A stretch of 43,322 nt of DNA from the NCBI GenBank assembly GCA_977017575.1, contig CDRNVI010000215.1:1-43322 (forward strand). The letters run 5' to 3'. Shown one piece after another: positions 1-37,329 of the stretch (positions within the stretch are counted from its first letter, which is position 1; every line of letters begins with the position of its first letter). Source of the stretch: Paramoeba atlantica. Its lineage: Eukaryota; Protista; Discosea. The notes beneath the pieces were generated by a model. The model searched no databases and was not told the origin of the DNA. It saw only the letters and a list, made by a program, of their open reading frames with translations. The translations under genes were made by a program, and so were the position numbers.

Positions 1-2060
1 TTCAATATCCATCACTTGAATCCGATGATTCAAAGTATCAGAAATAACAATATTCCCATCTCTATCAACTACAACACTGTAAGGTTCATCAAATTGACCT
101 TCAGAAGAACCTTTTGAACCAAAAGAACGAAGAAAAGATCCATCATTATCAAACACTTGAATTCGATGATTGTAAGTATCACAAACAATAATTCTACCTT
201 CTTCATCCACATCCACACCACATGGTCCCTCAAACTGACCATCTTCAGAACCTTTTGATCCAAAAGATTTGATCAATTTTCCTTCTTTGTTTAATATTAC
301 AACTCGGCGAAAACCTTGAGACCAATCAAGAACAACAATTTGATCATTCAATCCAATTGAAACATCAGAAGGTTTCAACTGAAGCGAATCAATTGTTTTC
401 TGAATTGTTGATTCAATCATCTCATTTCCTTCTTTATCTCTCACTCTCAATCCACCTGCCAACCCTTCACAAATAAAAATATTCCCATCACTGTTCACAC
501 TCACTCCAAAAGGTTGATTCTTCAAAGGAAAAGAAGAAACAACACGAAAAGAATCACCACCACCATCACAACAAATCACTCCTTTCTTTGGTTTTGAGAA
601 TAACCCAACAACACCTCCTTCAGAAACAATATCATTTGCAGTTTGAAGAAGAATTAAAAAAAGTTGATCATCAAAAAAGAGAGAAACATCACAATCAGTT
701 GTTTTTGTTGTTGTTGTTGTTGTTGTTGGTGTGTTGGATAAACGAATAATTGAATCTTTTCTTATTCTCAAATCTTCTTTCTCCAATTCTATTTCTTTCT
801 TTTCAATTCTTTTCTTTTCTAATTTCTTTTCTAATTCTTTCATTTCTTTTTCAATCCTTTTTTTTTTCTTTTCAATCAAAATCAATCTTTTCTCCAATTT
901 ATCTCCCACCTTTACAACTTCATTTCTCTTCTCTAAAATACTTTCTTCAATCGATTTCACTTTCTTTCTGTAATCATCATGAGTTTCAAGAACACAACAA
1001 ATACAAACAAAAGAAGAACATTCAAAACAATATCCACAAATTGTTTCAGATGGGTGTTTTGAACATTCTCTCTTCTTCAAATTCTCCAATCCCATCACTC
1101 CCACCACCCCTCCCTCCTCTTCCAATCTTCTTCTTCCACCTCCTCCCTCAACACTATTTCTTTCAGATCGTTTGTGATTTCGAGAGAAAATAGAAGAAGA
1201 GTGAGATGGATCACAAGAATCACAAAGAAAGACTTTACAATCAGAACAAAACATTTGAATTTGTTCTCCACACGTTTTGAAATTCACACATCTTCTTTGA
1301 ACTTCTCCTGATTTGTTTTTTTTGTTGTTTCAAAAAAAAGAAAATAAATTAGTGAAGGTGGGAGGGGGTGGGTGGGTTGAATTCCCCAAAAAAGAAAAAA
1401 GAAAGATAAAAAAAAAGAAAAAAAGAAGAAACCTGAAGTTGATTGATTGGAGAAAGAGATCAAATTTGAAGAAAGAAGAATATCAACCGTTTCTGGAATC
1501 AAAAAATTCATCGAAAATGCTTCAACGCTTTCACATTCGTTCATTTCGCGACACACTGGACATTTCACTCCTTTCAAAGAAGGGAAAAAAGGGGAAGAAG
1601 AGGAAGAGGAAGATGAGGGAGAAGAAGGAGAAGAAGAGGGAGAAGAAGAAGAAGAAGAAGAAGAAGAAGGAGATGAAGAAGGGTTTTGAAGAAGTAAGAG
1701 TTTGTTAAGGCAAAGAGAACAAAAAGAAAGACCACAACAAGGTAACAATCTTGGTTCTTTTTCCCAATTCATCAATTCCAAACATATTCCACATTCAAAT
1801 CTTTTCTTTTTCTCTTCTTCTTCCTTTCTTCTCCTTTTCATCATCTCTTCTTCTTGTTCTCTTTCTCCTTCTTCCTCTCGCTCTTTTCTTTGTTGTTCTT
1901 GATCTTCTATTTCTTGTTCTTCTCCAACATCACTTTCATCATCATCACCAGATTGTTCTTCTTTCTTTTCTTTTCTTGTTTTTCGTTTCTCTTTCTCATT
2001 CTCACTCTCCACAATCTCTATTCCTTCTCTCTTTTTCTCTCCTTTTTTTCCTTCACTCAT
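1..2060 (-). CDS. G1: TRIM-NHL-like protein (RING-Bbox1-Bbox2-CC-NHL), 3' end runs off the window
   Basis: ATG at 2060 (MSEGKK). Exon 1 is 2060-1433, intron 1432-1308, exon 2 1307-<1. Exon 2 was hand-translated as open for the whole length (CVNFKTCGE...CSKHPSE...GQFEGPCGVDV...DTLNHRIQVMDIE). The last B-box2 His is replaced by Tyr (HDDY). Confidence 0.9.
1308..1432 (-). other. G1 intron (125 nt, phase 1)
   Basis: TCAG|gt...cactaat...aaaaacaaatcag|GA; splicing restores the frame. Confidence 0.85.
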
Positions 2061-2676
2061 TTTGTTTTCACGTCCCACCCAACAACAAAAAAGGAAACAA
2101 CTTTTGAAAAGAGAAGAACAAAAACACAAGTAAAATAGATGAAAGATCTCTGGGTGAAACAATAAATAATCAATAACCACAACACACACACAAACAAAAA
2201 GAGAACAAAATGATAAAACACACACACATAAAAACAAGAAAAAAGAAGGATTCAAAGATAAAAATAAAAATCAAAACCTTTTTCTCAAAATTTCCAAAAA
2301 AAAAAAAGAGAGAGGATACAAAAAAAACAAGCAGTATTTAGAAGAGGGAGAAGAAGAAAACGAAAATGTCCAGAGACTCCTCCTAACTCACAATCCACAA
2401 CACCCCCACAACAACAACAACAACAAAAAAAAGCCTGAATAATTCACAAAAGAGAGAGAGAAAAACCTTGTCAACAAAAGATCCAAAAAAAAGACAAAGA
2501 GAGAAAGAGAGAAAGAGAAAAAGAGAAAAAAAAAAAACACAAAAATGAAAAATGGCAAGAGGAGAGAAGAGGAGGGACAAAAAAATGGATAAAAAAATGA
2601 GAAAAAAGAAGACTCTGAAAGAAATCAAAACTGTGAGGCAAATCAGAACCAAAATGAAATGTCCAAATGAAATACA

Positions 2677-2709
<33 letters not shown>

Positions 2710-2953
2710 GAGTGCAAAACAAAATCTCAGCAAAGAAGAGAAACAACAGAAAGATGGGAAGAAGAGAAGAAACAAAAATAAAAGAGGATGTTGTCCAAAA
2801 AGAGGAACAACAAAAACTCAAAAAAAGAGATTCAACGAGAACTGAAATCAAGAGAGAGACAGACAGAACAAAAGGAAAAAAAAAACAGAAAGAAAGAAAG
2901 AACAAGAGAAGAGACAAAGAAAAAACGACAGAAAAAAAGGAAGGATACGAAAA

Positions 2954-2978
2954 GAGGATTCAAAACTTTTTAAACCTC
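2954..2978 (-). promoter_or_regulatory. Conserved 25-nt hairpin-like element of head-to-head spacer, copy P1
   Basis: GAGGTTTAAAAAGTTTTGAATCCTC on the minus strand; one copy per divergent gene pair. Function is inferred, not shown. Confidence 0.45.
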
Positions 2979-3639
2979 TGAAAAAAACACACCAAAAACT
3001 TTTTCTTTTTCGTTTCCTCTCTTTTCTCTTTTCTCTTCTCTTCTTTCTTGTTCTTGTTCTTCTCCTTCTTCTTCTCCTTCTTCTCCTTCTTCTCCTCCTT
3101 CTCCTTCTTCTTCTCCTTCTTCTCCTTCTTCTTCTTCTCTCAACAATTTCTTTTCAAGATCCTTCTTTTGAATCCTTCTCTTTTGGATCTCTCCTTCTCT
3201 CATTTTTTCGTTTGTTTGGAGATCTCTTTCTTTCTCTTGGTGTTTCATATTTTGGACCCCTTTTTGGATTATCTTGTTTTTGTCTCTTTTCTTCTCTTCT
3301 CTTCACTTTGCATTCGTGACTTTTTGGGAGATGTTTGTATTTTTACTTTCTTTCTTTTTTCTCTTTGTCCCATTTTTGAAAAATTTGTTAGAACCTTTCT
3401 CTCTCTCTTCTTTCTCTCTCTCTCTCTCTTTGTAGGACATTCTCTAAGAATTGGTTCTCTCTCCATTGTTCCTCTTTTTATTCCTTTTGTTTTTTTTTTG
3501 GGGGGGGGGTAGTACCAGTCTCTTTTGTGTGTGTGTGATAGTTTTTTGGTTTGATTTTTTCTTTTTCCTTTTTTCCTTTTTATTTCTTATTTTTTGTTGT
3601 ATTGATTTCTTTTTCCTACACAGAGAGAAGAGAGACAAA

Positions 3640-5953
3640 ATGAGTGAAAAAAGAGGAAAGAGAAAAAGAGGAGGAGGAAAACAAGGAATGGAATTAGAAA
3701 GTGAGAAAAAGAGAAAAACCAAAAGAGGAAAGAAAGAGAAAGAAGAAGAAGATGTTGTTGTTGTAATTGAAGATGACAATGATGATGAAATAGAACAAAG
3801 AGAAAGAAGAAATGAGGATGTTCTTGGAAAGAGAGAACAACAAGTGGGACAAAATGAAGGAGAAGGAGAAGGAGAAAGAGAAAGAGAAGAAGAGATGATG
3901 AAAAGAAGAAGAAAGGAAGAAGAAGAGAAAAAGAAAAGATTTGAATGTGGAATATGTTTGGAATTGATGAATTGGGAAAAAGAACCAAGGTTGTTACCTT
4001 GTTGTGGTCTTTCTTTTTGTTCTCTTTGTCTCCACAAACTCTTTCTTCTTCAAAATCCTTCCTCCTCTTCCTCTTCTTCTTCTTCTTCTTCCCCATCTTC
4101 TCCCTCTTCCTCTCCCTCTTTGAAAGGAGTGAAATGTCCAGTTTGTAGAGAAATGAACGAATGTGAAAGCATTGAAACACTTTCGATGAATTATTTGATT
4201 CCAGAAACAATTGATGTTCTTCTTTCTTCAAATTTGATCTCTTTATCCCAACAATCAACTTCAGGTTTCTCCATTTTGATTTTTTTTTTCTTTCTTTTCT
4301 TTTGCTGCTTTTGAACTGAGCCCAAGACCACTCCTAAACCCAATTCGACCCACCCACCCTCCACCTTCACTGATTTAGTTTCTTCTTTTTTGAACAAAAA
4401 AAACAGGATGTGTGAATTTCGAAACGTGTGGAGAACAAACTCGAATGTTTTGTCCTGATTGTAAAGTCTTTATTTGTGATTCTTGTGATCTGTCTCACTC
4501 CTCTTCTATTTTCACTCGAAATCACAAACGATCTGAAAGAGATGGTGTTGAGGGAGGAGGTGGAAGAAGAAGATTGGAAGAGGAGGAGGGAGGGGTGGTG
4601 GGAGTGATGGGATTGGAGAATTTGAAGAAGAGAGAATGTTCAAAACACCCATCTGAAACAATTTGTGGATATTGTTTTCAATGTTCTTTTTTTGTTTGTG
4701 TTCGTTGTGCTCTTGAAACACATGTTCAACACAATGAGAAAGTGAAATCGATTGAAGAAAGTATTTTAGAGAAAAGGAATGAAGTCGTAAAGATTGGAGA
4801 TAAATTGGAGAAAAGATTGATTGAGATTGAAAAGAAAAGAAAAAGAATTGAAAAAGAAATGAAAGAATTAGAAAAGAAATTAGAAAAGAAAAGAATTGAA
4901 AAGAAAGAAATAGAATTGGAGAAAGAAGATTTGAGAATCAGAAAAGATTCAATTATTCGTTTATCCAACACACCAACAACAACAACAACAACAACAACTG
5001 ATTGTGATGTTTCTCTCTTTTTTGATGATCAACTTTTTTCAACTCTTCTTCAAACTGCAACTGATATTGTTTCTGAAGGAGGTGTTGTTGGATTTGGAAA
5101 GAAAGGAGTGATTTGTTGTGATGGTGGTGGTGATTCTTTTCGTTTTGTTTCTTCTTTTCCTTTGAAGAATCAACCTTTTGGAGTGAGTGTGAACAGTGAT
5201 GGGAATATTTTTATTTGTGAATGGGAGGGTGGATTGAGAGTGAGAGATAAAGAAGGAAATGAGATGACTGAATCAACAATTCAGAAAACAATTGATTCAC
5301 TTGAGTTGAAACCTGTTGATGTTTCAATTGGATTGAATGATCAAATTGTTGTTCTTGATCATTCTCAAGATTCTCGGAGAGTTGTAATCTTAAACAAAGA
5401 AGGAGAATTGATCAAATCTTTTGGATCAAGAGGTTCTAAAGATGGTCAGTTTAATATTCCATATGGTGTGGATGTGGATGAAGAAGGTAGAATTATTGTT
5501 TGTGATACTTTGAATCATCGAATTCAAGTATTTGATAATGATGGATCTTTTCTTCATTCTTTTGGTTCATTTGGTTCTTTTGAAGGTCAATTTAATATAC
5601 CTTCTGGTGTTGCAGTTGATCGAGATGGGAATATTGTTATTTCTGATTGTAAAAATCATCGGATTCAAGTGATGGATATTGAAGGGAATTTTATTCGATG
5701 TTTTGGAACAAAAGGTTCAGATGATTCTCAATTTGATTATCCAAAAGGTGTTGATGTGGATGGGGAAGGTAGAATTGTTGTTTGTGAGCAAGGAAATAGA
5801 AGAGTGAGTGTGTTTGAGAAAGATGGAACATTTCTTTTTTCATTTGGTCAATCTCACATGGGAGATCCTTATGGGGTTGTTATTGATTCATTTGGAACAA
5901 TTATTGTTTCAGATTGGGAGAAAAAGTCAATTGAATTTTGGAAATCATTTTGA
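3640..5953 (+). CDS. G2: TRIM-NHL-like protein, 723 aa spliced
   Basis: Exons 3640-4264 and 4407-5953 join in frame (STS-G-CVNFETC). RING CGIC...PCCGLSFCSLC...CPVC; B-box1 CPDC..CDSC...H..H; B-box2 CSKH..CFQC..CVRC..HVQH; E/K coiled coil; NHL repeats (GQFxxPxGV.VD..G.I.V.D..NHRIQVF). Confidence 0.92.
4265..4406 (+). other. G2 intron (142 nt, phase 1)
   Basis: TCAG|gt...cactgat...aaaaaaaacag|GA; splicing restores the frame. Confidence 0.88.
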
Positions 5954-6613
5954 AAAGAGGAGGTTTTTTCATTTTCTTTTTTTTTGTTTCTTTTTTTGAG
6001 AGAAGTGAAAGGTGTGTTCTTTGTTTGTTTATTTTTTTTCTTTTTTCTTTTTTTGATTTTCATTTAATTTTATTTTTTTATTTTTGTGTACTTTTTTTTC
6101 TTGTTCTTTGGAGGAAAATGAAAGAAATTAATTTTTTTTTTCTCTTTCCCCCTCTTTTTAGTTTTAGTCTCTGTTGTGGTGTGGTGTGGTGTGGTGTGGT
6201 CTTCTTCTTTTCCAATCACCTTCTTCTTCTTCAATTTCGATCCGATTTTTATCTCTTTCGTTCCCTCCCTTTTCTTTTCTTTTTAGTCTCTTCTGGTGCA
6301 CAAAATGTTGGGGTGTTCTTTTTGTTCCAATTTTTCGCTTTGATTTTATTCTCCTTCTTTCAAACCTTTTTTTTCTGATTTGCTCCACAGACCAATCATG
6401 ACTCTCTCTTTCTCTCTCTCCTCTCCTCCTCTCCCTTACTTCACTCTCCCTCTCTCTGTTTCTTATATCTCTTTCTTATTCTCTCTCATTCTTTTCTTTC
6501 TCAATTTTCTTTGGTTTTGGTTGGGATGGGTGAGAATTTTCTCAATTTCTTGATCCTTTTGTGGAATACTATTTTTCAATTTTTTTGTTAATTAAAATTT
6601 CGTTTTTTCCAAA

Positions 6614-6780
6614 AATTGTGTTTCTCTCATTCAATCAACCAAAAAAAAATGAATTCCTCCTCTCCCCACTCCCAACAACAACCAAAAAAAAGAAAAAAAA
6701 AGGTTGTTTTTGAGATTTGAAAGAGTGTTGTTGAGTTTGGGTATTATTTATTCAACCAAATAAAAAAGATGAATCAACAA
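6614..6780 (+). repeat. Conserved asymmetric core of tail-to-tail spacer, copy T1 (approximate bounds)
   Basis: aattgtgtttctctcattcaatcaacc...gaattcctcctctc...gagtttgggtattatt...gatgaatcaac. Homologs at about 12885-13020 (-), 20350-20505 (-), 27505-27630 (+) and 33330-33505 (-). Confidence 0.85.
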
Positions 6781-7392
6781 AAAGAACATAAAACAAAAAA
6801 CAAGGTACAAAAAAAAAAGGAACAAAAATTTCAACAAAAAGACAGAGCAACAGAAGAATATGCAAAAAAATATTGCAAAAAAGAATCATTTCTTTTTCAC
6901 AAAAACAAAATTTTGAAGAAAACAAAAAAAAAGAAAAATAATTTAAATCAAAAAAAGAGAAGAGGAAGAGAAAGAGAGAGAACACAAAAACATAAAACAC
7001 ACACAACAACAATAAAACACAAAAATGAAGAGGAGAAACAAAATCAAAGAAAAGTGTTTTTGAAGAAGAATAAGGATCAAAAATTGAAACAAAAATTGAA
7101 GAAGAATGATGATGATTTTGGGGGGAAGAAGAAGACCACACCACAACAGAGACTAAAAAGGAGAAAAGGGAGGAGGGGAGGAAGGGGAGGGGAGGAAGGG
7201 GAGGAAGGAGGGGAAAAGAGGAGAGAAGAGAAAAAATATTAATTTCTTGTTTTTAATTTTCTTCAAACAAAAAAGGAAACAAAAAGAAAAAATAAAGAAA
7301 AAATGATACAAAATAATAAAATAAAACAAATCAAAATCAAAAAAAGAAAAAAAGAGAAAAAAAAGAGAAAAGAAAAAAACCTCCATCTCTTT

Positions 7393-9584
7393 TCAAAATA
7401 ATTTCCAAAATTCAATTGACTTTTTCTCATAATCTGAAACAATAATTGTTCCAAATGAATCAATAACAACCCCAATAGGAGTCTTCATGTGATGTTTACC
7501 AAATGAAAAAAGAAATGCTCCATCTTTCTCAAACACACTCACTCTTCCATTTCCTCCATCACAAACAACAATTCTACCTTCCCCATCCACATCAACACCT
7601 TTTGGATAGTCCAATTGAGAATCACCTGAACCTCTTGTTCCAAAACATCGAATAAAATTCCCTTCAATATCCATCACTTGAATCCGATGATTCAAAGTAT
7701 CAGAAATAACAATATTCCCATCTCTATCAACTACAACACTCTGAGGTTGATCAAATTGACCTTCAGGAGAACCAAATGAACCAAAAGAACGAAGAAAAGA
7801 TCCATCATTATCAAACACTTGAATTCGATCATTGTAAGTATCACAAACAATAATTCTACCTTCTTCATCCACATCCACACCACATGGACTCTTAAACTGA
7901 CCATCTTTAGAACCAACTGATCCAAAAGATTTGATCAATTCTCCTTCTTTGTTTAAGATTACAACTCTCCGAGAATCTTGAGACCAATCAAGAACAACAA
8001 TTTGATCATTCAATCCAATTGAAACATCAACAGGTTTCAACTCAAGTGAATCAATTGTTTTCTGAATTGTTGATTCAGTCATCTCATTTCCTTCTTTATC
8101 TCTCACTCTCAATCCACCCTCCCATTCACAAATAAAAATAATCCCATCACTGTTCACACTCACTCCATAAGGTCCGTTCTTCAAAGGAAAAGAAGAAACA
8201 ACACGAAAAGAATCATCACCACCATCACAACAAATCACTCCTTTCTTCCGAAATCCGACAACTCCTTCAGAAACAATATCAGTTGCAGTTTGAAGAAGAA
8301 TTGAAAAAAGTTGATCATCAAAAAAGAGAGAAACATCACAATCAGTTGTTGTTGTTGTTGTTGTTGTTGGGGTGTTGGATAAACGAATAATTGAATCTTT
8401 TCTGATTCTCAAATCTTCTTTCTCTAATTCTATTTCTTTCTTTTCAATTCTTTTCTTTTCTAATTTCCCTTCTAATTCTTTCATTTCTTTTTCAATTCTT
8501 TTTCTTTTCTTTTCAATCAAAATCAATCTTTTCTCCAATTTATCTCCAATCTTTACAACTTCATTTCTCTTCTCTAAAATACTTTCTTCAATTGATTTCA
8601 CTTTCTCATTGTGTTGAACATGAGTTTCAAGAGCACAACGAATACAAACAAAAGAAGAACATTGAAAACAATATCCACAAATTGTTTCAGATGGGTGTTT
8701 TGAACATTCCCTCTTCTTCAAATTCTCCAATCCCATCACTCCCACCACCCCTCCCTCCTCTTCCAATCTTCTTCTTCCACCTCCTCCCTCAACACCATCT
8801 CTTTCAGATCGTTTGTGATTTCGAGAGAAAATAGAAGAGGAGTGAGACAGATCACAAGAATCACAAATAAACATCTCACATTGGGAACAATACATTCGAG
8901 TTTGTTCTCCACACGTTTCAAAATTCACACATTCTGATCCATCTCCTGTTGTTTTGTTTTTCAAAAAACAGGTTTTTTCAACTTTGAAATAACTTTCTCA
9001 CAATAAAAGAAAGAATGAATGAAAGAAAGAAAACCTGATTGATTGGAGAAAGAGATCAAATTTGAAGAAAGAAGAACATCAATCGTTTCTGGAATCAAAT
9101 AATTCATCGAAAGTGTTTCAACTCTTTCACATTCGTTCACTTCTCTACAAACTGGACATTTCAGTCCTTTCAAAGAAGGGGGAGAAGAAGAAGAGGAAGA
9201 AGAAGGAGAGAAAGAAGAAGAAGAAGAAGAGGAAGGATTTTGAAGAAGAAAGAGTTTGTGGAGACAAAGAGAACAAAAAGAAAGACCACAACAAGGTAAC
9301 AACCTTGGTTCTTTTTCCCAACTCATCAATTCCAAACATATTCCACATTCAAATCTTTTCTTTTTCTCTTCTTCTTCCTTTCTCCTTCTTTTTATCATCT
9401 CTTCTTCTTGTTCTCTTTCTCTTTCTTCCTCTCTTTCTCCTTCATTTTGTCCCACTTGTTGTTCTCTCTTTCCAAGAACATCTTCATTTCTTCTTTCTCT
9501 TTGTTCTTTTTCATCAACATTGTCATCTTCAATTACAACAACTTCTCCCCCTCCTCTTTTTCTCTTTCCTCTATTTTCACTCAT
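7393..9584 (-). CDS. G3: TRIM-NHL-like protein, 700 aa spliced
   Basis: Exons 9584-9035 and 8945-7393 join in frame; same domain motifs as G2. Confidence 0.92.
8946..9034 (-). other. G3 intron (89 nt, phase 1)
   Basis: TCAG|gt...aaaacaacag|GA; splicing restores the frame. Confidence 0.85.
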
Positions 9585-10382
9585 TTTGTCTCTCTCTGTG
9601 TGGGAAAAAGAAATCAATCAACAAAAAATAAGAAATAAAAAGGAAAAAAGAAAAAATCAAACCAAAAAACTATCACACACAAAAGAGACTGGGACCACCC
9701 CCCCAAAAAAAACAAAAGGAATAAAAAGAGGAACAATGGAGAGAGAACCAATTCTTAGAGAATGTCCTACAAAGAGATAGAAGAGAGAGAGAGAGAGAGA
9801 GAAGTAGAGAGAAAGAGGTTCTACCAATTTTTTTAAAAATGGGACAAAAAGAGAAAAAGGAAAGAAAGTAAAAATACAAACATCTCCCAAAAAGTCACGA
9901 AAGATTTTCTTCTTTTGCAAAGTGAAGAGAAGAGAAGAAAAGAGACAAAAACAAGATAATCCAAAAAGACTCCAAAATATGAAACACCAAGAGAAAGAAA
10001 GAGATCTCCAAACAAACGAAAAAAATGAGAGAAGGAGAGATCCAAAAGAGAAGAAGAAATCCTCAATCCAAAAATCTTCAAAGATGGTGACACGAAAGAT
10101 CCCCAAAATGAAAGGAGAGAGAGAGAGAGAGAGAGTCCAAAACAAGAGGTCGAAGAGAGCCCAAATGAATGAGAGAGAGAGAGAGAAGGGAAGAAGAGGG
10201 ACAAAAAAAAAAAGGAATGAAAGAGATTAAAAACGAGGTCTCTCCTTTCCAAAAAATGAAACAGGAGAAGGAGAGAAGATAAGGGAGAGAAACAAAAACA
10301 AATTGAGAGAAAGAGGAAGAAGAGAAGAGAGAGAGAAAAGAGGGGAAAAAGTTTTTGGTGTGTTTTTGTGATATTTTTTTCA

Positions 10383-10407
10383 GAGGTTTAAAAAGTTTTG
10401 AATCCTC
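10383..10407 (+). promoter_or_regulatory. Conserved 25-nt hairpin-like element, copy P2
   Basis: Identical to P1, opposite strand. Confidence 0.45.
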
Positions 10408-13351: not shown

Positions 13352-13566
13352 GAAGAAAAGATCCATCATTATCAGACACTCGAATTCGATGATTCCATCA
13401 GCAACAATAATTCTACCTTCTTCATCCACATCCACACCATATGGTTCTTTCAACTGACCAACTTTAGAACCACTTGCTCCAAAAGATTTGATCAATTCTC
13501 CTTCTTTGTTTAATATTACAACTCGACAAGAATTTTGGGAACAATCAAGAACAACAATTTGATCAT
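13352..13566 (-). pseudogene. Orphan internal NHL segment (end of blade 2 to blade 3) inside a tail-to-tail spacer, frameshifted
   Basis: Translates DQIVVLDCSQNSCRVVILNKEGELIKSFGASGSKVGQLKEPYGVDVDEEGRIIVAD, then shifts frame to NHRIRVSDNDGSFL; flanked on both sides by spacer sequence. Confidence 0.85.
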
Positions 13567-17021: not shown

Positions 17022-17046
17022 GAGGTTTAAAATGTTTTGAATCCTC
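17022..17046 (+). promoter_or_regulatory. Conserved 25-nt hairpin-like element, copy P3
   Basis: One substitution, in the predicted loop. Confidence 0.45.
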
Positions 17047-24300: not shown

Positions 24301-24325
24301 GAGGTTTAAAAAGTTTTGAATCCTC
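24301..24325 (+). promoter_or_regulatory. Conserved 25-nt hairpin-like element, copy P4
   Basis: Identical to P2. Confidence 0.45.
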
Positions 24326-24839
24326 TTTTCGTACCCTTCCTTTTTTTCTCTCTTTTTTTTCTGTTTTTTCTCTTTCTTTGTCTCTCTTGTTCATTCTTGT
24401 TCTTTCTTTCTTTCTCTTTTTTCCTTTTGTCTCTCTTGCTGAGATTTTGTTTTGCGCCCCTCTCTCTCTCTCTTGTTTTGAGTGTCCATTTGACTTTTTG
24501 TCAGTTTTTCTCTTCTCTTCTCTGAACATTTTTCGTTTTTGTGTTTTCCTTTCTTCTTTCTCTTTCTCTCTTTGTCTTTTTTCTCTTGTTGACAAAAGGG
24601 TTTTTCTCTCTTTCTTGGTGATAGATCCTCTCTCTTTTTTTTTGGAGATTTTGAGAAAAAGGTTTTGATTTTTTTTTCTCTTCTTTTTTCTTGTTTTTGT
24701 GTGTGTATGTGTGTATCAGTTTGTTCTCTTTTTGTGTGTGTGTGGTATTAATTACGATTATTTATTGTTCACAAGAGATCTTCAGTTACTTACTGTGTTT
24801 TTTGTTCTCTTTTCAAAAGTCGTTTCTTTTTTGTTACAA

Positions 24840-27077
24840 ATGAGTGAAGGAAAAAACGGAGAGAAAAAGAGAGGAGGAATCAAGATTGATGAGAAAGATA
24901 AACAAAAAACAAAAAAGAAAAAGAAAGAAGAACAATCTGATGATGAGGATGAAAGAAAAGGGAGAGAGGGAGAAAGAGAAGAAGAACAAGAAGAAGAGAT
25001 GATAAAAAGAAGAAGAAAGGAAGAAGAAGAGAAAAAGAAAAGATTTGAGTGTGGGATATGTTTGGAATTGATGAGTTGGGAAAAAGAACCAAGGTTGATA
25101 CCTTGTTGTGCTCTTTCTTTTTGTTCTCTTTGTCTCAACAAACTCTTTCTTCTTCAAAATCCTTCTTCTCCCTCTTCTTCCTCTTCTCCTTCATCCTCTT
25201 CCTCCTCTTCTCAATCTCCCTCTTCTTCTTCTTTGAAAGGAGTGAAATGTCCTGTTTGTAGAGAAATGAACGAATGTGAAAGCATTGAAACACTTTCGAT
25301 GAATTATTTGATTCCAGAAACGATTGATGTTCTTCTTTCTTCAAATTTGATTTCTTTATCCCACCAATCAACTTCAGGTTTCTTCTTTTTCTTCTTCTTT
25401 TCTTTCTTTTTTCTTCTTTTGAGTCATTTGACCCACCCACCCTGCCACTTTCACTGATTTATTTTCTTCTTTTTTTAAACAACAAAAAAAAACAATTCAG
25501 GAGAAGTTCAAAGAAGATGTGTGAATTTTGAAACGTGTGGAGAACAAACTCGAATGTATTGTTCTGATTGTAAAGTCTTTATTTGTGATTCTTGCGATGA
25601 TTCTTCTCACTCTTCTTCGATTTTCACTCGAAATCACAAACGATTTGAAAGAGATGGCGATGAGGGAGGAGATGGAAGAAGAAGATTGGAGGAAGAGGGG
25701 GGAGTGATGATGGTGGGAGTGGGAGTGGGAGTGGGATTGGAGAATTTGAAGAAGAGAGAATGTTCAAAACACCCATCTGAAACAATTTGTGGATATTGTT
25801 TTCAATGTTCTTCTTTTGATTGTCCTCGTTGTGCTCTTGAAACTCATGTTCAACACAATGAGAAAGTGAAATCGATTGAAGAAAGTATTTTAGTGAAGAG
25901 AAATGAAGTTGTAAAGGTTGGAGATAAATTGGAGAAAAGATTGATTGAGATTGAAAAGAAAAGAAAAAGGATTGAAGAAGAAATGAAAGAATTAGAAGAG
26001 AAATTGGAAAAGAAAAGAATTGAAAAGAGAGAAACAGAATTGGAGAAAGAAGATTTGAGAATAAGAAAAGATTCAATTATTCGTTTATCCAACACACCAA
26101 CAACAACAACAACAACAACAACAACTGATTGTGATGTTTCTCTCTTTTTTGATGATCAACTTTTTTCAATTCTTCTTCAAACTGCAAACGATATTGTTTC
26201 TAAAGCTGGGGTTGGTGAAGCACTCAAACCAAAGAAAGGAGTGATTTGTTGTGGTGTTAATTCATGTCGTGATGTTTCTTCTTTTCCTTTGAAGTATTAT
26301 CCTTATGGAGTGAGTGTAAACAGTGATGGGAATATTTTTATTTGTGATGATGGGGGTGGATTGCAAGTGAGAGATAAAGAGGGAAATGAGAATGAGATGA
26401 TTGAATCAACAATTCAGGAAACAATTGCTTTACTCAGGTCGGGCCCTTATGAGGTTTCAATTGGATTGAATGATCAAATTGTTTTTCTTGATTGGTCTCA
26501 AGATTGTCGGAGAGTTGTAATCTTAAACAAAGAAGGAGAGTTGATCAAATCTTTTGGATCAAATGGTTCTGAAGATGGTCAGTTTAATGCCCCAAATGGT
26601 GTGGATGTGGATGAAGAAGGTAGAGTTATTGTTGCTGACTCTGGAAATCACCGAATTCAAGTGTTTGAGAGTGATGGATCTTTTCTTCGTTCTTTTGGTT
26701 CAGAAGGTTCTTCTGAAGGTCAATTTAAGACACCTTATGGTGTTGTAGTGGATAGAGATGGGAATATTGTTATTTCTGATTCTGGGAATGATCGGATTCA
26801 AGTGATGGATATTGAAGGGAATTTTATTCGATGTTTTGGAACAAGAGGTTCAGGTGATTCTCAATTCGATTATCCAACAAGTATTGATGTTGATGGGGAA
26901 GGTAGAATTGTTGTTTGTGATGGAGGAAATAGAAGAGTGAGTGTGTTTGAGAAAGATGGAACATTTCTTTTTTCATTTGGTAAACATCACATGAAATATC
27001 CTTTTGGGGTTGTTGTTGATTCATTTGGAACAATTATTGTTTCGGATCAGGACAGAAAGTCAATTGGATTGTGGTAA
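24840..27077 (+). CDS. G8: TRIM-NHL-like protein, 704 aa spliced
   Basis: Exons 24840-25377 and 25501-27077 join in frame; NHL blades 1-2 are notably divergent (KYYPYGV, LLRSGPYEV). Confidence 0.92.
25378..25500 (+). other. G8 intron (123 nt, phase 1)
   Basis: TCAG|gt...cactgat...aaacaattcag|GA; splicing restores the frame. Confidence 0.88.
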
Positions 27078-28135
27078 TCATTTTGAAAAGAGAGATGGAG
27101 GTTTTTTTCTTTTTTCATTTTGATTTGTTTTATTTTATTATTTTGTATCATTTTTTGTTTATTTTTTATTTTTGTTTCCTTTTTTGTTCAAGAAAATAAT
27201 TAAAAAAAGAAATTAATATTTTTTTTCTCTTCTCTTTTTCCCTCCCTTCCCTTCCTCCCTTTTCTCCTTTTTAGTCTCTGCTGTGGTGCGATGATCTTCT
27301 TCTTTTTCCCCAAATCTTCATTCACCTTGATTCGATTTTTTATCCTTCTTCTTTTTTTCATTTTTGTGTTTTGTGTTTTGTGAAAATTCTCTCTCCTTTC
27401 TCTTCCTCTTTTCTTTTTTTGTTGAGATTTTATTCCTTTTTTTGATCCTTTGTGAATGCTGTGCTATTATTCTCAATTTTTGTTTATTAAAATTTTGTTT
27501 GTAAAATTTTGTTCCTCTCATCCAATCAACCAAAGTATCTGAATTTCCCCAATAACAAAAAAAGAAAAAAAAGTTGTTTTTGAGTTTGGATATTATTCAT
27601 TCAATCAAATCAAAAAGATGAACCAACAACAAGAAGCAACAAAAATCTCAACAAAAAGCAGAGTTCGATGAAAACAAAATTTGAAGAAAACAAAAAACAA
27701 AAAAAGAAAAATATTAAAAAACAAGAGAAGAGGAAGAGGAAGAGAGAGAATTTTCACAAACACAGACAACAACAAAACAACACAAAAATGAGAGGAGAAA
27801 CAAAATCAAGAAAAGTGTTTTTGAAGAAGAAGGATAAAAAATCGAATCAAAAATTGAAGAAAGAATGATGATGATTTCGGGGGGAAGAAGAAGACCACCG
27901 CGCCACAACAGAGACTAAAAAGGAGAAAAGGGAGGAGAGGAGGGGAGGGGAGGAAGAGGAGGGGAGGAGGGAAGGGGGGGAAAGAGAAGAGAAAAAAAGA
28001 GATTAATTTCTTCTTTTTAATTTTCTTCAAACAAAAAAGGAAACAAAAATAAAAAATAAACAAAAAACGATACAAAATAAAATAAATGAAAATCAAAAAA
28101 GAAAAAAGAAAAAAGAAAAAACCTCCATCTCTCTT

Positions 28136-30162
28136 TCAAAACGATTTCCAAAATTCAATTGACTTTTTCTTATAATCTGAAACAATAATTGTTCCAAATG
28201 AATCAACAACAACTCCACTCGGATACTTCATGTGATCTTCACCAAACGAAAAAAGAAATGTTCCATCTTTCTCAAACACACTCACTCTTTCATTTCTTCT
28301 ATCACATACAACAATTCTACCTTCCCCATCCACATCAACACTTGTTGGACAATTGAATCGAGAATCACCTGAACCATATGATCCAAAACATCGAATAAAA
28401 TTCCCTTCAATATCAAACACTTGAATCCGATCATTCCCAGAATCAGAAACAACAATATTCCCATCTCTATCAACTACAACACCATAAGGATAATTAAATT
28501 GTCCTTCAGAAGAACCCTTCGAACCAAAAGAACGAATAAAAGATCCATCTTTATCAAACACTTGGATTCGATGATTGTCGATATCAGCAACAACAATTTT
28601 ACCTTCTTCATCTACATCCACACCAGATGGATCATTAAACTGACCATCTTCAGAACCTCCTGATCCAAAAGATTTGATCAATGCTCCTTCTTTGTTTAAT
28701 ATTACAACTCGACAATGATCAAGAAGAACAATTTGATCATTCAATCCAATTGAAACATCAGAAGGTTCCAACTCAAGTGAATCAATTGTTTTCTGAATTG
28801 TTGATTCAATCATCTCATTTCCTTCTTTATCTCTCACTTCCAATCCACCAGCATATTCACAGGTAAAAATATTCCAATCACTGTTCACACTCACTCCACA
28901 AGGTTGACTCTTCAAAGGAAAAGAAGAAACACAACGAAAAGAATCACCACCACCATCACAACAAATCACTCCTTTCTTTGGTTTGAGTAACCCAACAACG
29001 CCTACAATATTAGTTGCAGTTTGAAGAAGAGTTGAAAAAAGTTGATCGTCAAAAAAGAGAGAAACATCACAATCAGTTGTTTTTGTTGTTGTTGGTGTTG
29101 GTGTGTTGGATAAACGAATAATTGAATCTTTTCTTATTCTCAAATCTTCTTTCTCCAATTCTATTTCTTTCTTTTCAATTCTTTTCTTTTCTAATTTCTC
29201 TTCTAATTCTTTAATTTCTTTTTCAATTCTTTTTCTTTCTTCTTCTTTCTCAATCAATCTTTTCTCCAATTTATCTCCAAACTTCACAATTTCATTTCTC
29301 TTCTCTAAAATACTTTCTTCAATCGATTTCACTTTCTCTTTGTGTTCGACATGAGTTTCAAGAGCACAACGAGGACAATCAAAAGAAGAACATTGAAAAC
29401 AATATCCACTGATTGTTTCAGATGGGTGTTTTGAACATTCTCTCTTCTTCAAATCCTCCAATCCCATCATTACCCCTTCCTCCAATCTTTCAGAACGTTT
29501 GTGATTTCGAGAGAAAATAGAAGAAGAGTGAGACGGCTCACAAGAATCGCAAATAAAGATTTTACAATCAGGACAATACATTCGAGTTTGTTCTCCACAC
29601 GTTTCAAAATTCACACAATCTTCTCCTGATTTGTTTTTTTTTTGTTGTTTCAAAAAAAGAAGAAAATAAGTCAGTGAAAGGTGACGAGGTGAGTTGGTCA
29701 AAGTACTCAAAAAAGAAAAAATGAAAGAAAAAAGAAAAATCATAAAAAATAAAGAAAACCTGAAGTTGATTGTCGGGGGAAAGAAATCAAATTTGAAGAA
29801 AGAAGAACATCAATTGTTTCTGGAATCAAATAATTCACCGAAAATGTTTCGACGCTTTCACATTCGTTCATTTCTCTACAAACTGGACATTTCACTCCTT
29901 TTAAAGAGGATGATGAAGAAGGAGAAGAGGGAGAAGAGGAAGAGGGAGAAGAAGAAGATGAAGAAGAAGGATTTTGAAGAAGAAAGAGTTTTTTGAGACA
30001 AAGAGTACAAAAAGAAAGACCACAACAAGGTAACAACCTTGGTTCTTTTTCCCAATTCATCAGTTCCAAACATATTCCACATTCAAATCTTTTCTTTTTC
30101 TCTTCTTCTTCCTTTCTTTTCATCATCTCTTCTTCTCTTTCTTCTGCTTTTCCTTCGCTCAT
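28136..30162 (-). CDS. G9: TRIM-NHL-like protein, 630 aa spliced, shortened N-terminus
   Basis: ATG at 30162 (MSEGKAEEREEEMMKR); exons 30162-29760 and 29625-28136 join in frame. Confidence 0.9.
29626..29759 (-). other. G9 intron (134 nt, phase 1)
   Basis: TCAG|gt...cactgac...aaacaaatcag|GA; splicing restores the frame. Confidence 0.85.
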
Positions 30163-30858
30163 TTTCACGTCGACCAACAAACAAAAAAAAAGTTTTTCAG
30201 GAACAACAAGAACAAGCAAACAAAAGTTCAGCAAGAGGGGAACTTTTGCACAGCAGAGAAAATGTGATAGCAGTGAAACACACACAAGATGGGAACGAGA
30301 CACCGGCAAAAAGGAATCAAAGATGCGTTTTACTCGAAGGAAAGGACAAAAAAAGCTAAGGTGGTCGGTGTGACGCCTTTCCAAGAAATCGGGACGTTCA
30401 GGTGGATGTCCCACCCTCCTTAACGAAATGATCCAGAGGGAAAGGTGCTAAATCTAGAGCGTCAGAGAGAGAGTTCCAAAAAACACAACCCAACCACGGA
30501 GAAGAGGGACAAACGGAAATGAGAGAGAAAGAGAGGGAGGTAAGAGGGAGAAAACGCAAGAAACCCTGCACCCAGAAGGAGGAAAAGAGAGGAAGAGGGA
30601 GAGAGGAGAGAAGAGAGAAGAAGAAGAGAGAAGATCAGAGAAGATCACAGAAGTTTTTTTTGTTGAGCATCTGAAAGCCTCTCTTTTCTGCATGTGAGGA
30701 GTTGAGAGAACATTTCGAGAGTGAATTTCGGTTTTGTTGCCCTTTAAAAATGGAACATTTTCTTCCTGAATCTCGTTTTTCTTTTTTGTTTTTTGTTTTC
30801 CTCGAGAAAAGAAGGAAAACAAAAAAACAAAAAACAAAAAAAAAAGAAGGTTTTTTCA

Positions 30859-30883
30859 GATGGTTAAAAAGTTTTGAATCGTC
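30859..30883 (+). promoter_or_regulatory. Conserved 25-nt hairpin-like element, copy P5 (variant)
   Basis: GATGGTTAAAAAGTTTTGAATCGTC. Confidence 0.4.
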
Positions 30884-30972
30884 TTTTCGGACCCTTTCTT
30901 TTTTCTTTTTTTTTTTTCTGTTTCCTTCTTCCCTCTCTCTCTCTTTTTTCGTTTGTCCCTCTTCTTGACAAA

Positions 30973-32786
30973 ATGAGTGAAAATAGAGGAAAGAGAAAGA
31001 GAGGAGGAGAAACAGAATTGGAAACTGAGAAAAAGAGAAAAACCAAAAGAGGAAAGAAAGAGAAAGAAGATCAAACAACAGATTGTGAGGATGATGTTGT
31101 AATTGAAGATGATGGTGATGATGAAAGAGAAAGAAAAAGTGAGGATGTTCTTGGAAAGAGAGAACACCAAAATGGAGAGGAAGAAAAAGAAGGAGAAAGA
31201 GAAGAGATGATGAAAAGAAGAAAGAAGAAAGAAGAAGAGAAAAAGAAGAGGTTTGAATGTGGAATATGTTTGGAGTTGATGAATTGGGAAAAAGAACCAA
31301 GGTTGTTACCTTGTTGTGCTCTTTCTTTTTGCTCTCTCTGTCTCAACAATCTCTTTCTTCTTCAAAATCCTTCTTCCTCTTCCTCTTCTTCTTCCTCGCC
31401 CCCTCCCTCTCCCTCTTCCTCTTCTTCTTCCCCTCCTTCCTCTTTGAAAGGAGTGAAATGTCCAGTGTGTCGCGAAGTGAACGAGTGTGAAACGATTGAA
31501 GCACTGGAAAAGAATTATTTAATTCCAGAAACGATTGATGTTCTTCTTTCTTCAAATTTGATCTCTTTCTTCAATCAATCAAGTTTTTTTTCTTTTTTCT
31601 TTTCTTTTCTTTATCTTTGGAACTGACTCCCTTTTTTGAACAAAAAAAATAGAAGAGGAAGTTGTCCCAAGATGTGTGAATTTCGAAACGTGTGGAGAAC
31701 GAACTCGAATGTATTGCTCTGATTGTAAAATGTTTGTCTGTGATTCTTGTGATTCCTCTCACTCTTCAACTATTTTCACTCGAAATCACAAACGATCTGA
31801 AAGAGATGGTGGTGTTGAGGGAGGAGGTGGAAGAAGAAGATTGGAGGGGGAAGTGGGATTGGAGAATTTGAAGAAGAGAGAATGTTCAAAACACCCATCT
31901 GAAACAATTTGTGGATATTGTTTTCAATGTTTTTCTTTTGTTTGTGTTTGTTGTATTCTCGGTCCACATGATGATCACAATAAGAAAGTGAAATCAATTG
32001 AAGAAAGTATTTTGGAGAAGAGAAATGAAGTTGTTAAGATTGGAGATAAATTGGAGAAAAGATTGAAGATTGTTGAAAAGAAAAGAAAAAGGATTGAAGA
32101 AGAAATGAAAGAATTAGAAGAGAAATTAGAAAAGAAAAGAATTGAAAAGAAAGAAATAGAATTGGAGAAAGAAGATTTGAGAATAAGAAAAGATTCAATT
32201 ATTCGTTTATCCAACACACCAACAACAACAACAAGAACTGATTGTGATGTTTCTCTCTTTTTTGATGATCAACTTTTTTCAACTCTTCTTCAAACTGCAA
32301 ATGATATTGTTTCTGAAGGAGGTGTTGTTGGATTACTGAAACCAAAGAAAGGAGTGATTTGTTGTGATGGTGGTGGTGATTCTTTTCGTTTAGTTTCTTC
32401 TTTCCCTTTGAAGAATCAACCTTGTGGAGTGAGTGTGAACAGTGATGGGAATATTTTTATTTGTGAATGGGTGGATGGTGGATTGAAAGTGAGAGATTTT
32501 GAAGGAAATGAGATGATTGAATCAACAATTCAGAAAACAATTGATTCACTTCATTTGAAACCTGTTGATGTTTCAATTGGATTGAATGATCAAATTGTTG
32601 TTCTTGATTGGTCTCAAGATTGTGATAGAGTTGTAATATTAAACAAAGAAGGAGAATTGATCAAATCTTTTGGATCAAGTGGTTCTGAAGATGAAATACC
32701 CTGTTGGGGTTGTTGTTGATTCATTTGGAACAATTATTGTTTCAGATTCTGACAAAAACTCAATTGAATTTTGGAAATCATTTTGA
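30973..32786 (+). pseudogene. G10: TRIM-NHL paralog with internal NHL deletion and frameshift (predicted 558-aa product ending at 32719)
   Basis: Exons 30973-31582 and 31653-. At 32691-32693 blade 3 (ggttctgaagATG) joins blade 6 (ATGaaatac). The native C-terminus ...IEFWKSF* persists out of frame to 32786. Confidence 0.88.
31583..31652 (+). other. G10 intron (about 70 nt, phase 1; NAGNAG acceptor ambiguity)
   Basis: TCAA|gt...ctgac...caaaaaaaatag|AA; an alternative AG at 31654-31655 is also in frame. Confidence 0.75.
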
Positions 32787-34099
32787 AAGAGGTGGAGGTT
32801 TTTTCTTTTTCTTTTTTTGATTTGTTTTATTTTCTTTTTTTGAATCATTTTTTTCTTTATTTCTTTTTGTTTCCTTTTTTGTTTGAAGAAAATTAAAAAC
32901 AAGAAATTAATAGTTTTTCTCTTCTCTTCTCTTTTCCCCCTTTCCTCCCCTTCCTCCCTTCCTCCCTTTTGTCCTTTTTAGTCTCTGTGTTGTGGTGCAG
33001 TGGTCTTCTTCTTCCCCCCCAAAATCATCATCATTCTTCTTCTTCCAATTTTTGATTCAATTTTTTATCCTTCTTCTTCAAAAACAACTTTTCTTGATTT
33101 TGTCTCTCCTCTTCATTTTTGTGTTTTATTGTTGTTGTGTTTTTGTGTTTTGTGTTTTTGTGAAAGTTCTCTCTCTTTCTCTCTTCCTCTTCTCTTTTTT
33201 TTTTTGATTTCAATTATTTTTCTTTTGTTTTCTTCAAATTTTGTTGTTGTTAAAAAGAAATGATCCTTTTTTGTTGTCCTGTCTTTTTGCGGCGATTTCG
33301 TACCTTCTTTTTTGTTTTGTTGTTCTTTTTGTTGATTCATCTTTTTTATATCATTTGGTTGAATAAATAATACCCAAACTCAACAACACTCTTTCAAAAC
33401 TCAAAAACAACTTTTTTTTTCTTTTTTTTGGTTGTTGTTGGGCGGGGGGAGAGGAGGAATTCATTTTTTTTTGGTTCATTGAAGGAGAGAAACACAATTT
33501 TTAGAAAAAAGAAATTTTAATTAACAAAAAAAATTGAAAAATAGTAATTCCACAAAAGGATCAAGAAATTGAGAAATGAAGAAAGAAAAAGAAAGAAAGA
33601 AAAGGATGAGGGAGAGAGAAGAAGAAAGAGATATCAGAAACAGACAAAGGGAGAGTGAAGTAAGGGAGAGGAGGAGAGGAGAGAGAGAAAGAGAGAGTCA
33701 TGATTGGTCTGTGGAGCAAATGGAAAAAAAAGGTTTGAAAGAAGGAGAATAAAATCAAAGCGAAAAATTGGGAACAAAAAGAACACCCCAATATTTTGTG
33801 CACCAGAAGAGACTAAAAAGAAAGGAAAAGGGAGGGAAAGAAAGAGATAAAAATCGAATCGAAATTGAAGAAGAAGAAGGTGATTGGAAAAGAAGAAAAA
33901 CCACACCACACCACACCACAACAGAGACTAAAACTAAAAAGAGGGGGAAAGAGAAAAAAAAATTAATTTCTTTCATTTTCCTTTAAAAAACAAGAAAAAA
34001 AAGGAAACAAAAATAAAAAAATAAAATTAAATGAAAATCAAAAAAGAAAAAAGAAAGAGAAAAGAAAAATGAAAAAAACCAACCCTTTCCTCCTCTCTT

Positions 34100-34498
34100 T
34101 CAAAATGATTTCCAAAATTCAATTGACTTTTTGTCAGAATCTGAAACAATAATTGTTCCAAATGAATTAACAACAACCCCAATAGGATATTCCAGGTGAT
34201 GTTTACCAAATGAAAAAAGAAATGTTCCATCTTTCTCAAACACACTCACTCTTCTTTTTCCTTTATCACAAACAACAATTCTACCTTCCCCATCCACATC
34301 AAGACAGTCTGGAGAGTTCAATTGAGAATCACCTGAACCTCTTGTTCCAAAACATCGAATAAAATTCCCTTCAATATCCATCACTTGAATTCGATTATTC
34401 CCAGAATCAGAAATAACAATATTCCCATCTCTATCAACTACAACACTCATAGGTTCATCAAATTGACCTTCAGAAGAACCTTCTGAACCAAAAGAACA
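34100..34498 (-). CDS. G11: 3' part (NHL blades 4-6) of an array paralog, truncated at the junction
   Basis: CSFGSEGSSEGQFDEPMSVVVDRDGN...KKSIEFWKSF*, followed by the usual array 3' spacer. Confidence 0.9.
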   Translation of the reverse strand, partial: CSFGSEGSSEGQFDEPMSVVVDRDGNIVISDSGNNRIQVMDIEGNFIRCFGTRGSGDSQLNSPDCLDVDGEGRIVVCDKGKRRVSVFEKDGTFLFSFGKHHLEYPIGVVVNSFGTIIVSDSDKKSIEFWKSF

Positions 34499-37314: not shown

Positions 37315-37329
37315 AGTATACTTATCCAA

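Follow-up and report, generated by a model that had tools for sequence, protein, structure and literature searches.

The analyzed window (contig C215, 43,322 nt at its full length) includes, between positions 1 and 34497, eleven TRIM-NHL paralogues that constitute one array of a family with at least 84 genes in the 45.7-Mb eukaryotic assembly. The genes follow each other on strands -,+,-,+,-,+,-,+,-,+,-, a strict alternation with a chance probability of 2/2^11 (about 0.001); the resulting layout, with head-to-head and tail-to-tail neighbors in turn, forms chains of up to about 25 units. The gene calls, from G1 at 1(-) to G11 at 34497(-), bear out the alternation described in a first-pass annotation of this DNA. 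The extent given there, 1 to 34498, holds for the array up to 34497, while 34498 is only the position where the homology stops because bacterial DNA begins.

The genes consist of a RING exon, an 80-135-nt intron, and an exon coding for the B-box, coiled-coil and NHL regions, and the eleven paralogues are ubiquitin ligase-like. The RING encoded by exon 1 of G5 scored 25.8 bits with the zf-RING_UBOX model against a cut-off of 25.2, other RING models remaining below their cut-offs, and the B-box reached 41.7 bits with zf-B_box (cut-off 24.1), accompanied by a weaker first B-box. The coiled coil was taken by eye from an E/K-rich heptad stretch of the translation, and the C-terminal NHL propeller (PF01436, 112 bits, at least three repeats) is encoded by a region with internal DNA repeats of 141 nt. 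An identical domain order is found in the expanded B-box/NHL (TRIM2/3-like) families of molluscs and echinoderms, which rank closest when protein-model features are compared (score 0.93), but those families are animal whereas the present array belongs to a 45.7-Mb microbial eukaryote genome.

The features are listed below, with G, P and T designating genes, head-to-head spacers and tail-to-tail spacers, respectively. The copies fall into two N-terminal classes, the A type (basic, NLS-like) and the B type; X and Y designate 3' flanks, and motif refers to a conserved segment of about 100 nt.

1-2062 (-): G1, TRIM-NHL gene truncated at the contig start; N-terminus of B type; motif of P1 directed towards it ("sense")
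2063-3639 (-): P1, inverted with respect to P2-P5; motif at 2920-2999(-)
3640-5953 (+): G2, intact; A-type N-terminus, Y-type 3' flank
5954-7392 (+): T1, Y flank beside G2 and long X flank beside G3
7393-9584 (-): G3, intact; recombinant, combining an A-type 5' end and an X-type 3' flank
9585-11298 (+): P2, motif at 10346-10445(+); upstream regions of A type on both sides and a B-type remnant at 10844-10969
11299-12450 (+): G4, in-frame internal deletion that leaves only NHL (RING end, B-boxes and coiled coil lost)
12451-14123 (-): T2, holding a 215-nt NHL fragment at 13352-13566(-)
14124-16408 (-): G5, intact; reference copy, whose best partner is the adjacent G6 (94.6%)
16409-17626 (+): P3, motif at 16985-17080(+)
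17627-19856 (+): G6, intact; B-type N-terminus, X flank
19857-21052 (-): T3, X flank beside G6
21053-23413 (-): G7, large exon broken, with ORFs at 21901-22635 and 21391-21882
23414-24839 (+): P4, motif at 24262-24362(+)
24840-27085 (+): G8, B-type; stop codon three codons ahead of the usual end
27086-28135 (+): T4, flipped with respect to T3 and T5; X flank at both ends and no Y flank
28136-30162 (-): G9, open frame; shortened B-type N-terminus, X flank
30163-30972 (+): P5, 660 nt unique in the genome followed by the motif at 30851-30919(+), 52 nt from G10
30973-32786 (+): G10, A-type; NHL partly deleted after reference position 1782
32787-34099 (-): T5, X flank beside G10 and Y flank beside G11
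34100-34497 (-): G11, last 396 nt (3' fragment) of a TRIM-NHL gene, ending at the junction
34498-43322 (-): right end, outside the array; bacterial CoxA N-terminus, CoxB, and alternative complex III-like genes

Intact-looking copies are limited to G2, G3, G5, G6 and G9, with G8 nearly so. All window genes with a 5' end (G1-G10) have their own ATG, all but G4, which has lost it by deletion, also have a RING exon of their own, and intron borders could be read in eight. The possibility that G1 and G11 are the two ends of one gene, as in a circular or overlapping contig, was rejected: they are 93% identical over their shared 128 nt and thus represent two different copies. The inverted genes flanking each spacer are 82-95% identical over 1.6-2.3 kb. 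Inverted repeats of about 2.2 kb stand on either side of every spacer, and the palindromes of the array therefore overlap in a chain.

A P module is composed of the upstream regions of both genes and one conserved motif. P1 aligns to P2, P3 and P4 solely in inverted orientation (75-88% over 230-830 nt), and the alignments together with the motif direction reproduce the previously assigned order -,+,+,+,+, where the orientation of P5 is that of its motif alone, its remaining 660 nt being found nowhere else in the genome. On four array contigs a single copy of the motif is present in 25 of the 28 head-to-head spacers, 12 times in (+) and 13 times in (-) direction, and none of the 28 includes a mirrored pair.

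A T module consists of one long X 3' flank and one Y 3' flank, a layout found in four of the five tail-to-tail spacers of the window. T1 and T4 run in one direction and T2, T3 and T5 in the opposite one (68-85% over 360-1400 nt), so that alignment returns the order +,-,-,+,- already proposed; T1 matches T5 in reverse complement at 85% identity along 1.35 kb. The only X-X spacer is T4, made up of an X-proximal flank (about 357 nt) on the G8 side and the reverse complement of the X-long flank on the G9 side. It had been described as flipped on its own, but the change is not a clean one, with X flank on both sides and 660 nt of unique DNA in the neighboring P5. The missing Y flank of T4 and the unique segment of P5 indicate non-homologous change and at least one event other than a clean reciprocal exchange. 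Elsewhere in the family some tail-to-tail spacers (457-707 nt) have no long X core, and the one at C173:37873-39108 shows matches in both directions; deletions or inverted duplications therefore contribute too.

Orientations of the P and T modules are statistically independent across the family. When the orientation of the upstream spacer of each gene (motif direction) was set against that of its downstream spacer (X/Y flank), the four combinations numbered 7:7:6:7 (Fisher p=1). Spacer orientation is comparable only within one contig, where a spacer and its closest relative agree in 15 cases and disagree in 18. The modules keep their integrity, and the uncoupling of their orientations, like the conflict of half-gene trees described next, gives indirect support to breakpoints between modules, inside the inverted-repeat gene bodies.

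The two halves of the genes differ in ancestry. For 45 full-length copies, the tree of the 5' half and that of the 3' half are each rejected by the other half (delta lnL 490 and 326, AU p 3e-7 and 2e-4), and the best-matching partner of a gene shifts window by window along its length. The adjacent inverted pairs G2/G3 and G5/G6 are reciprocal best matches (93.0% and 94.6%), and no other adjacent copies share exact tracts as long as theirs (154 and 122 nt respectively); the longest identical tracts are located mid-gene, between coiled coil and propeller (reference positions ~1090-1570). Distance has a weak effect on gene identity, which is 0.907 for adjacent inverted copies, 0.902 for direct copies two apart, and 0.893 for copies on other contigs. 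No single breakpoint could be located in the gene bodies because these are about 90% alike at any distance.

Direct duplication of a gene pair cannot yield the observed orientations, a point made in the first-pass annotation and confirmed here. We consider it probable that they are the footprint of homologous exchanges that took place repeatedly, on an evolutionary time scale, within the inverted genes on either side. Such recombination within gene bodies, as an intrachromatid crossover or as a conversion tract aligned the reverse way, would have turned the spacers with copy number and alternation kept, and the same exchanges could have re-paired 5' halves (promoter side, N-terminal class, RING/B-box/coiled coil) with 3' halves (NHL propeller and 3' flank). 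Between inverted neighbors an exchange reverses the spacer and no genes are deleted, and in this respect the earlier argument that exchange between inverted copies conserves copy number was upheld. The companion claim, that crossovers between neighbors flip spacers and swap gene halves, agrees with the uncoupling and the trees as an account of the past, but not as a working system; we regard the turning of spacers as history and not as a switch that is programmed or operates often.

We infer that at least two or three events shaped the window. One would be an inversion with one end in G3 and the other outside the contig, past its start; a further one would be a messier rearrangement at T4-G9-P5. 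The segment P1-G2-T1 is, as had been suspected, an inverted T-G-P block, since four HSPs align 2683-6822 collinearly to 12809-17274 read in reverse complement. A single inversion with breakpoints in G3 and beyond the contig start would explain it, and two local flips would be unnecessary.

In mammalian sex-chromosome palindromes (PMC8327919) an asymmetric spacer also lies between inverted homologous gene-bearing arms. Arm-to-arm exchange homogenizes those arms, an intrachromatid crossover inverts the spacer with no loss of copies, and, as in the array, two orientations are found among related loci. On the other hand, the sex-chromosome arms are at least 10 kb long and more than 99% identical, whereas those described here are single 2.2-kb genes, 82-95% identical, each of which serves as an arm of two adjoining palindromes. 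Furthermore, the evidence presented here comes from paralogous copies in one assembly, and that for the sex-chromosome palindromes from orthologues or populations.

It is unlikely, although worth considering, that the mixed orientations arose as the array grew, by inverted (palindromic or ODIRA-type) duplications of gene-plus-spacer blocks followed by decay, with no turning in place. The left 12 kb do read as a large palindrome centered on T1: G2 and G3, including 500 nt upstream, form an inverted match of 92-97%, all of P1 is 79-88% identical to inverted P2, and G1 is 88% identical to G4. In addition, T4 comes close to a palindrome of two X flanks, and C173:896-3946 is an inverted copy of C173:8824-11860 (88%). 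A yeast study (PMC4689423) describes a replication-based path, ODIRA or palindromic amplification, that gives adjacent copies in alternating orientation as in the array. Inverted duplication of this kind would produce mirror-symmetric junctions at short inverted repeats, whereas the spacers of the array are asymmetric with one motif each, and the head-to-head spacers (0/28) hold no mirrored motifs. Moreover, the supposed center T1 is an ordinary asymmetric X-Y module, 85% identical to T5 over its full length and 80-83% identical to spacers on other contigs, and the identity of the arms around it is uneven (97% down to 79%), as expected of patchy conversion.

Errors of assembly, in which the assembler switched between paralogous arrays within conserved gene stretches and mis-joined the spacers, are an improbable source of the orientations. 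C215 is short, begins within a gene and runs at its right end into unrelated bacterial DNA, and must therefore include at least one false or unusual join; arrays are also found at contig ends, C139 ending and C173 starting inside one, and in parts of the gene all copies agree at 95-98%. However, the copies differ by 5-18% and their shared exact tracts of at most 154 nt would easily be spanned by long reads, while five or six genes have long open frames, which indicates a polished sequence. The mix of orientations recurs on four contigs, the 320-kb C139 included, and on four further contigs by motif coordinates, and as no inverted arm pair exceeds about 97% identity none is a fold-back artefact. 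The arrays on C204, C213, C150 and C228 were covered by match coordinates only. The whole analysis covers one assembly, in which the right end of this contig (34498-43322, GC 41%, with no second copy in the assembly), an orphan bacterial respiratory operon, is most likely an assembly chimera.

Neither a haplotig nor a near-identical copy of C215 that might reveal a flip as a polymorphism was found in the assembly, the best other matches being 83% for T1, 78% for P3 and 89% for G1 plus P1. Spacers related but opposite in orientation have diverged from each other by 12-30%. The only recent duplicate, C139:290016-299467 versus C173:37907-28790 (94-96% identical), has a sole informative spacer, which is unflipped.

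There is a slim chance that the chain of palindromes is still active, with recombinase-free flipping between neighbors in growing cells and clones that hold many array isomers. If so, NHL recognition halves would be re-paired with other promoter sides and N-terminal classes (A/B), a eukaryotic, homology-driven counterpart of the shufflon with copy number protected, and ongoing flipping would be a new route for a eukaryote to vary its recognition repertoire.

In a shufflon, a site-specific recombinase joins alternative 3' segments to a single constant expressed 5' part. The bacterial examples (R64 pilV/Rci; PMC9881135) resemble the array in that inverted repeats within coding sequence bound the invertible segments and in that inversion would swap 3' parts of a binding protein with copy number kept. 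They differ by their recombinase and short target sites, neither of which was found in the array, and by their single constant 5' part, where each array copy has its own start and upstream region. The proposal that the array works like a shufflon was not sustained, as start codon, 5' exon and upstream region are present separately for each copy and no recombinase domain was found in the spacer ORFs tested. Very improbable indeed is a working diversity generator in which frequent mitotic or programmed inversions between neighbors reshuffle NHL halves and promoter sides within a clone. The architecture permits inversion, orientation is fully randomized across the family, gene halves are recombined according to the conflicting half trees, and an exchange in the mid-gene identical tracts would swap whole domains. 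Nevertheless, the five spacer ORFs of at least 150 amino acids gave no Pfam domain, that of a recombinase included, the remaining long ORFs of the window are all TRIM-NHL, antisense of TRIM-NHL, or bacterial, no RNA family was matched in the spacers, and no short conserved crossover site other than the genes themselves was found. Each copy can be expressed separately, so that no inversion is needed for a variant to be expressed, and the sole informative spacer of the recent duplicate is unflipped. The flanking repeats, in addition, are merely 82-95% identical with exact tracts of up to 154 nt. Exchange is rare between repeats of such identity, being limited by mismatches.

The array shows how a large receptor-like family can exchange parts without loss of copies. 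With spacer direction randomized family-wide and the spacers whole, it is a clear natural record of inversion exchange outside animals, and such arrays are places where assemblies may break or strains may differ.

A conserved ORF or small gene in the tail-to-tail cores was considered and rejected; tblastx matches are alike in all frames, and the conservation is thus at the DNA level only. A dispersed transposon as the source of the spacer cores was also rejected, strong matches being confined to array contigs; only an A-rich stretch of about 110 nt beside the stop codon matches satellite-like repeats outside the arrays. No Rfam family reached threshold in the spacers, and the two copies of the P motif tested gave no consistent stable fold (z +0.5 and -2.5). 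With 40 copies genome-wide (18 in (+) and 22 in (-) direction), all on array contigs, the motif is 85-97% conserved, better than the coding DNA, and may serve the two genes of each pair as a common control element.

The window spans the full length of contig C215, one of the 248 that make up a 45.7-Mb eukaryotic assembly. Its positions 1-34497, with a GC content of 33%, include 11 copies (G1 to G11, from left to right) of one gene, in which the first exon codes for a RING finger and, after a GT..AG intron roughly 80-135 nt long, a large exon codes for a B-box, a coiled-coil region rich in E and K, and NHL repeats (Pfam). This is the layout of a TRIM-NHL gene, and in protein-model features the gene product comes closest to the B-box/NHL families expanded in molluscs and echinoderms. 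The assembly has at least 84 matches to the TRIM-NHL protein, most of them in arrays on contigs C139, C173, C204, C213, C150, C228 and C175. Gene models obtained by aligning the reference copy, G5, to the window have the strands -,+,-,+,-,+,-,+,-,+,-, bearing out the alternation described in the first-pass annotation; such strict alternation is expected by chance about once in 1000. The state of the copies is as follows.

G1: truncated by the contig start
G2, G3, G5, G6, G9: open frames
G4, 10987-12450 (+): internal deletion, in frame
G7, G10: broken copies
G8: nearly open frame
G11: 396-nt 3' fragment

The deletion in G4 removed the end of the RING, both B-boxes and the coiled coil, and the resulting open frame has an acidic N-terminal region fused directly to an apparently intact NHL propeller. 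Over roughly its first 195 nt, the coding region exists in two versions: class A ('MSEKRGKRKRGG...'), which is basic, and class B ('MSEGKKGEKKRE...'). The class A N-terminus is strongly basic and includes the stretches KRGKRKRGG and KKRKTKRGKK, both absent from class B (3640-3700, 17627-17700 and equivalents); these stretches look like nuclear localisation signals.

The ten spacers of the window, five head-to-head (P1 to P5) and five tail-to-tail (T1 to T5), were compared all against all to call their orientation. P1 matches P2, P3 and P4 in the inverted orientation only. A conserved element of about 100 nt, referred to here as the motif, is common to all five head-to-head spacers.

2920-2999 (-), motif in P1
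10346-10445 (+), motif in P2
16985-17080 (+), motif in P3
24262-24362 (+), motif in P4
30851-30919 (+), motif in P5

T1 and T4 are oriented one way and T2, T3 and T5 the opposite way; the alignments behind this call cover 360-1400 nt at 68-85% identity. The two orientation strings given earlier, -,+,+,+,+ for the head-to-head and +,-,-,+,- for the tail-to-tail spacers, are therefore correct, as is the description of P1-G2-T1 as an inverted T-G-P block: nucleotides 2683-6822 are colinear with the reverse complement of 12809-17274.

The head-to-head spacers comprise both upstream regions and the single motif. The tail-to-tail spacers switch from T-rich to A-rich midway, which indicates that the two halves are the 3' flanks of the two adjoining genes. 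A long flank, X, is colinear over 750-1300 nt in G3, G6, G9 and G10, while a second type, Y, is found in G2 and G11 and, in looser form, in G5 and G7; the orientation of a tail-to-tail spacer is a matter of which convergent gene of the pair carries the X flank. No conserved reading frame was found in the tail-to-tail spacers, and no spacer had an Rfam match. T2 holds a stranded 215-nt fragment of the NHL region (13352-13566, minus strand, 89% identical to G5), probably a relic of a lost gene copy. The A-rich 110 nt or so past the stop codons (7264-7380 and others) match, at 76-83%, tandem satellite-like repeats present on many unrelated contigs (C141, C144, C152, C167, C170, C177, C182 and C184).

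We read 196 kb of other arrays and modelled their genes (C139, 234-320 kb; C173, 1-100 kb; C175, 1-10 kb); arrays on four further contigs entered through match coordinates only. Alternation is also the rule in the C139, C173 and C175 arrays, and the two exceptions among the approximately 25 genes of the C139 array both involve fragments. Of 28 head-to-head spacers searched with a motif profile, 25 carry a single copy (12 in one direction, 13 in the opposite one) and three carry none; no spacer has two. Assembly-wide there are 40 copies (18 plus, 22 minus), all on array contigs, most of them 93-97% and all at least 85% identical, a higher level than in coding DNA (about 90%). With the exception of C175, all contigs that have at least two copies show both orientations. 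Motif direction and X/Y flank were uncoupled in the 27 genes with both adjoining spacers callable, the four combinations occurring 7, 7, 6 and 7 times (Fisher p=1), and a spacer and its nearest in-contig relative agreed in orientation 15 times and disagreed 18 times. The array observation is thus confirmed and extended to the whole TRIM-NHL family. The motif, which yielded no Rfam match or consistent fold, includes the sequence ...CAGAG/GTTTAA... and could be a shared promoter element or leader exon border. N-terminal classes over four contigs numbered 35 A and 11 B, and the motif is faced by 7 of the 11 B-type genes.

Since the spacers are intact and independent in direction, and nothing but gene bodies separates them, the borders of the rearrangements should fall inside gene bodies. 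These bodies are inverted repeats flanking every spacer, and homologous exchange between inverted neighbours would give the observed pattern, through either a crossover inside one chromatid or a conversion tract pairing the spacer flanks in reverse; both routes would preserve copy number and alternation. Trees of the 5' and 3' halves of 45 full-length copies were mutually rejected (delta lnL 490 and 326; AU p 3e-7 and 2e-4), and the best partner of a gene shifts between windows along its length. The adjacent inverted pairs G2/G3 (93.0%) and G5/G6 (94.6%) are reciprocal best matches within the window, and no other neighbouring pair shares exact tracts as long as theirs (154 and 122 nt, respectively). 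The tree conflict, the shifting partners and this reciprocity are consistent with such exchange. The same process is well documented in palindromes of primate sex chromosomes: intrachromatid recombination between arms inverts the spacer, and inversions of this kind frequently distinguish species and also occur as polymorphisms in humans (PMC8327919). The array described here is a chain of such palindromes, where each gene is an arm of two. Homologous recombination is supported as evolutionary history, and in that sense the crossover between inverted neighbours proposed by the first-pass annotation is supported by the whole spacers, the uncoupled directions and the half-gene tree conflict; the comparison with a working shufflon is not.

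When G5-P3-G6-T3-G7 is taken as unrearranged, the pattern would pair a Y-flanked gene, from which the motif points away, with a following X-flanked gene, towards which it points. Against it, G1, P1, G2, T1 and the 3' side of G3 would form a single inverted stretch; G3 combines a native 5' side with an X flank. One inversion with breakpoints in G3 and beyond the contig start would explain this stretch, or, alternatively, two local flips. T4 had been described as flipped on its own. Its orientation is indeed opposite to that of T2, T3 and T5, but it has an X-type flank at both sides and no Y flank. Beside it lies G9, complete and of B-type/X-type but on the "wrong" strand, followed by P5, in which 660 nt have no match elsewhere in the genome. 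The T4-G9-P5 event is not a clean reciprocal exchange. C139 and C173 have tail-to-tail spacers of 457-707 nt that lack the X core, as well as one that matches in both directions, so deletion and perhaps inverted duplication have shaped the arrays too.

Growth of the array through palindromic or ODIRA-type inverted duplication would account for the structure of T4 and for an uneven but real 12-kb palindrome around T1. We consider it improbable: it would give mirror-symmetric junctions, but mirroring is seen in 0 of 28 head-to-head spacers, and the best palindrome is centred on T1, which has the ordinary X-Y make-up also found in T5 and in spacers of other contigs. Assembly error is an unlikely source of the mixed orientations: C215 does contain one false or unusual join, but the copies differ by 5-18%, there is no near-identical inverted arm pair as expected of a fold-back artefact, and the same pattern is found on a 320-kb contig. 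Least supported is a working shufflon-like switch, since shufflons and related programmed inversions depend on a recombinase and usually act on a single target gene (PMC9881135), whereas here five spacer ORFs had no Pfam domain, recombinase or other, short crossover sites were not found, every copy is separately expressible, neighbours are imperfectly homologous, and the sole recent duplicate (C139 versus C173, 94-96% over 9.5 kb) is colinear, with its one informative spacer unflipped.

The homology to the gene family ends at 34497. From 34498 the GC content is 41%, and the first 110 or so residues of a bacterial CoxA continue in frame with the NHL fragment; the rest of this operon, up to 43322, comprises CoxB and alternative-complex-III-like genes. 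C215 ends inside this bacterial DNA, of which the assembly has no second copy. The 34497/34498 junction most likely arose by chimeric joining with DNA from a bacterium in the same culture, and is irrelevant to the array, save as a caution about C215.

Spacers of the C139 array contain a 2.5-kb element twice, in inverted orientation and with 99.2% identity between the copies (C139:259681-262179, or L019:5681-8179, and C139:309137-311636). Its 522-aa ORF includes a piggyBac-type transposase domain (PF13843, E 6e-45), and the element has the look of a DNA transposon that was active recently. Nearly identical copies of cox1, one on each of about 15 contigs (C108-C134), have 10-11 TGA codons in their reading frame; TGA is a sense codon in the mitochondrial genome, of which the assembly seems to include many versions.
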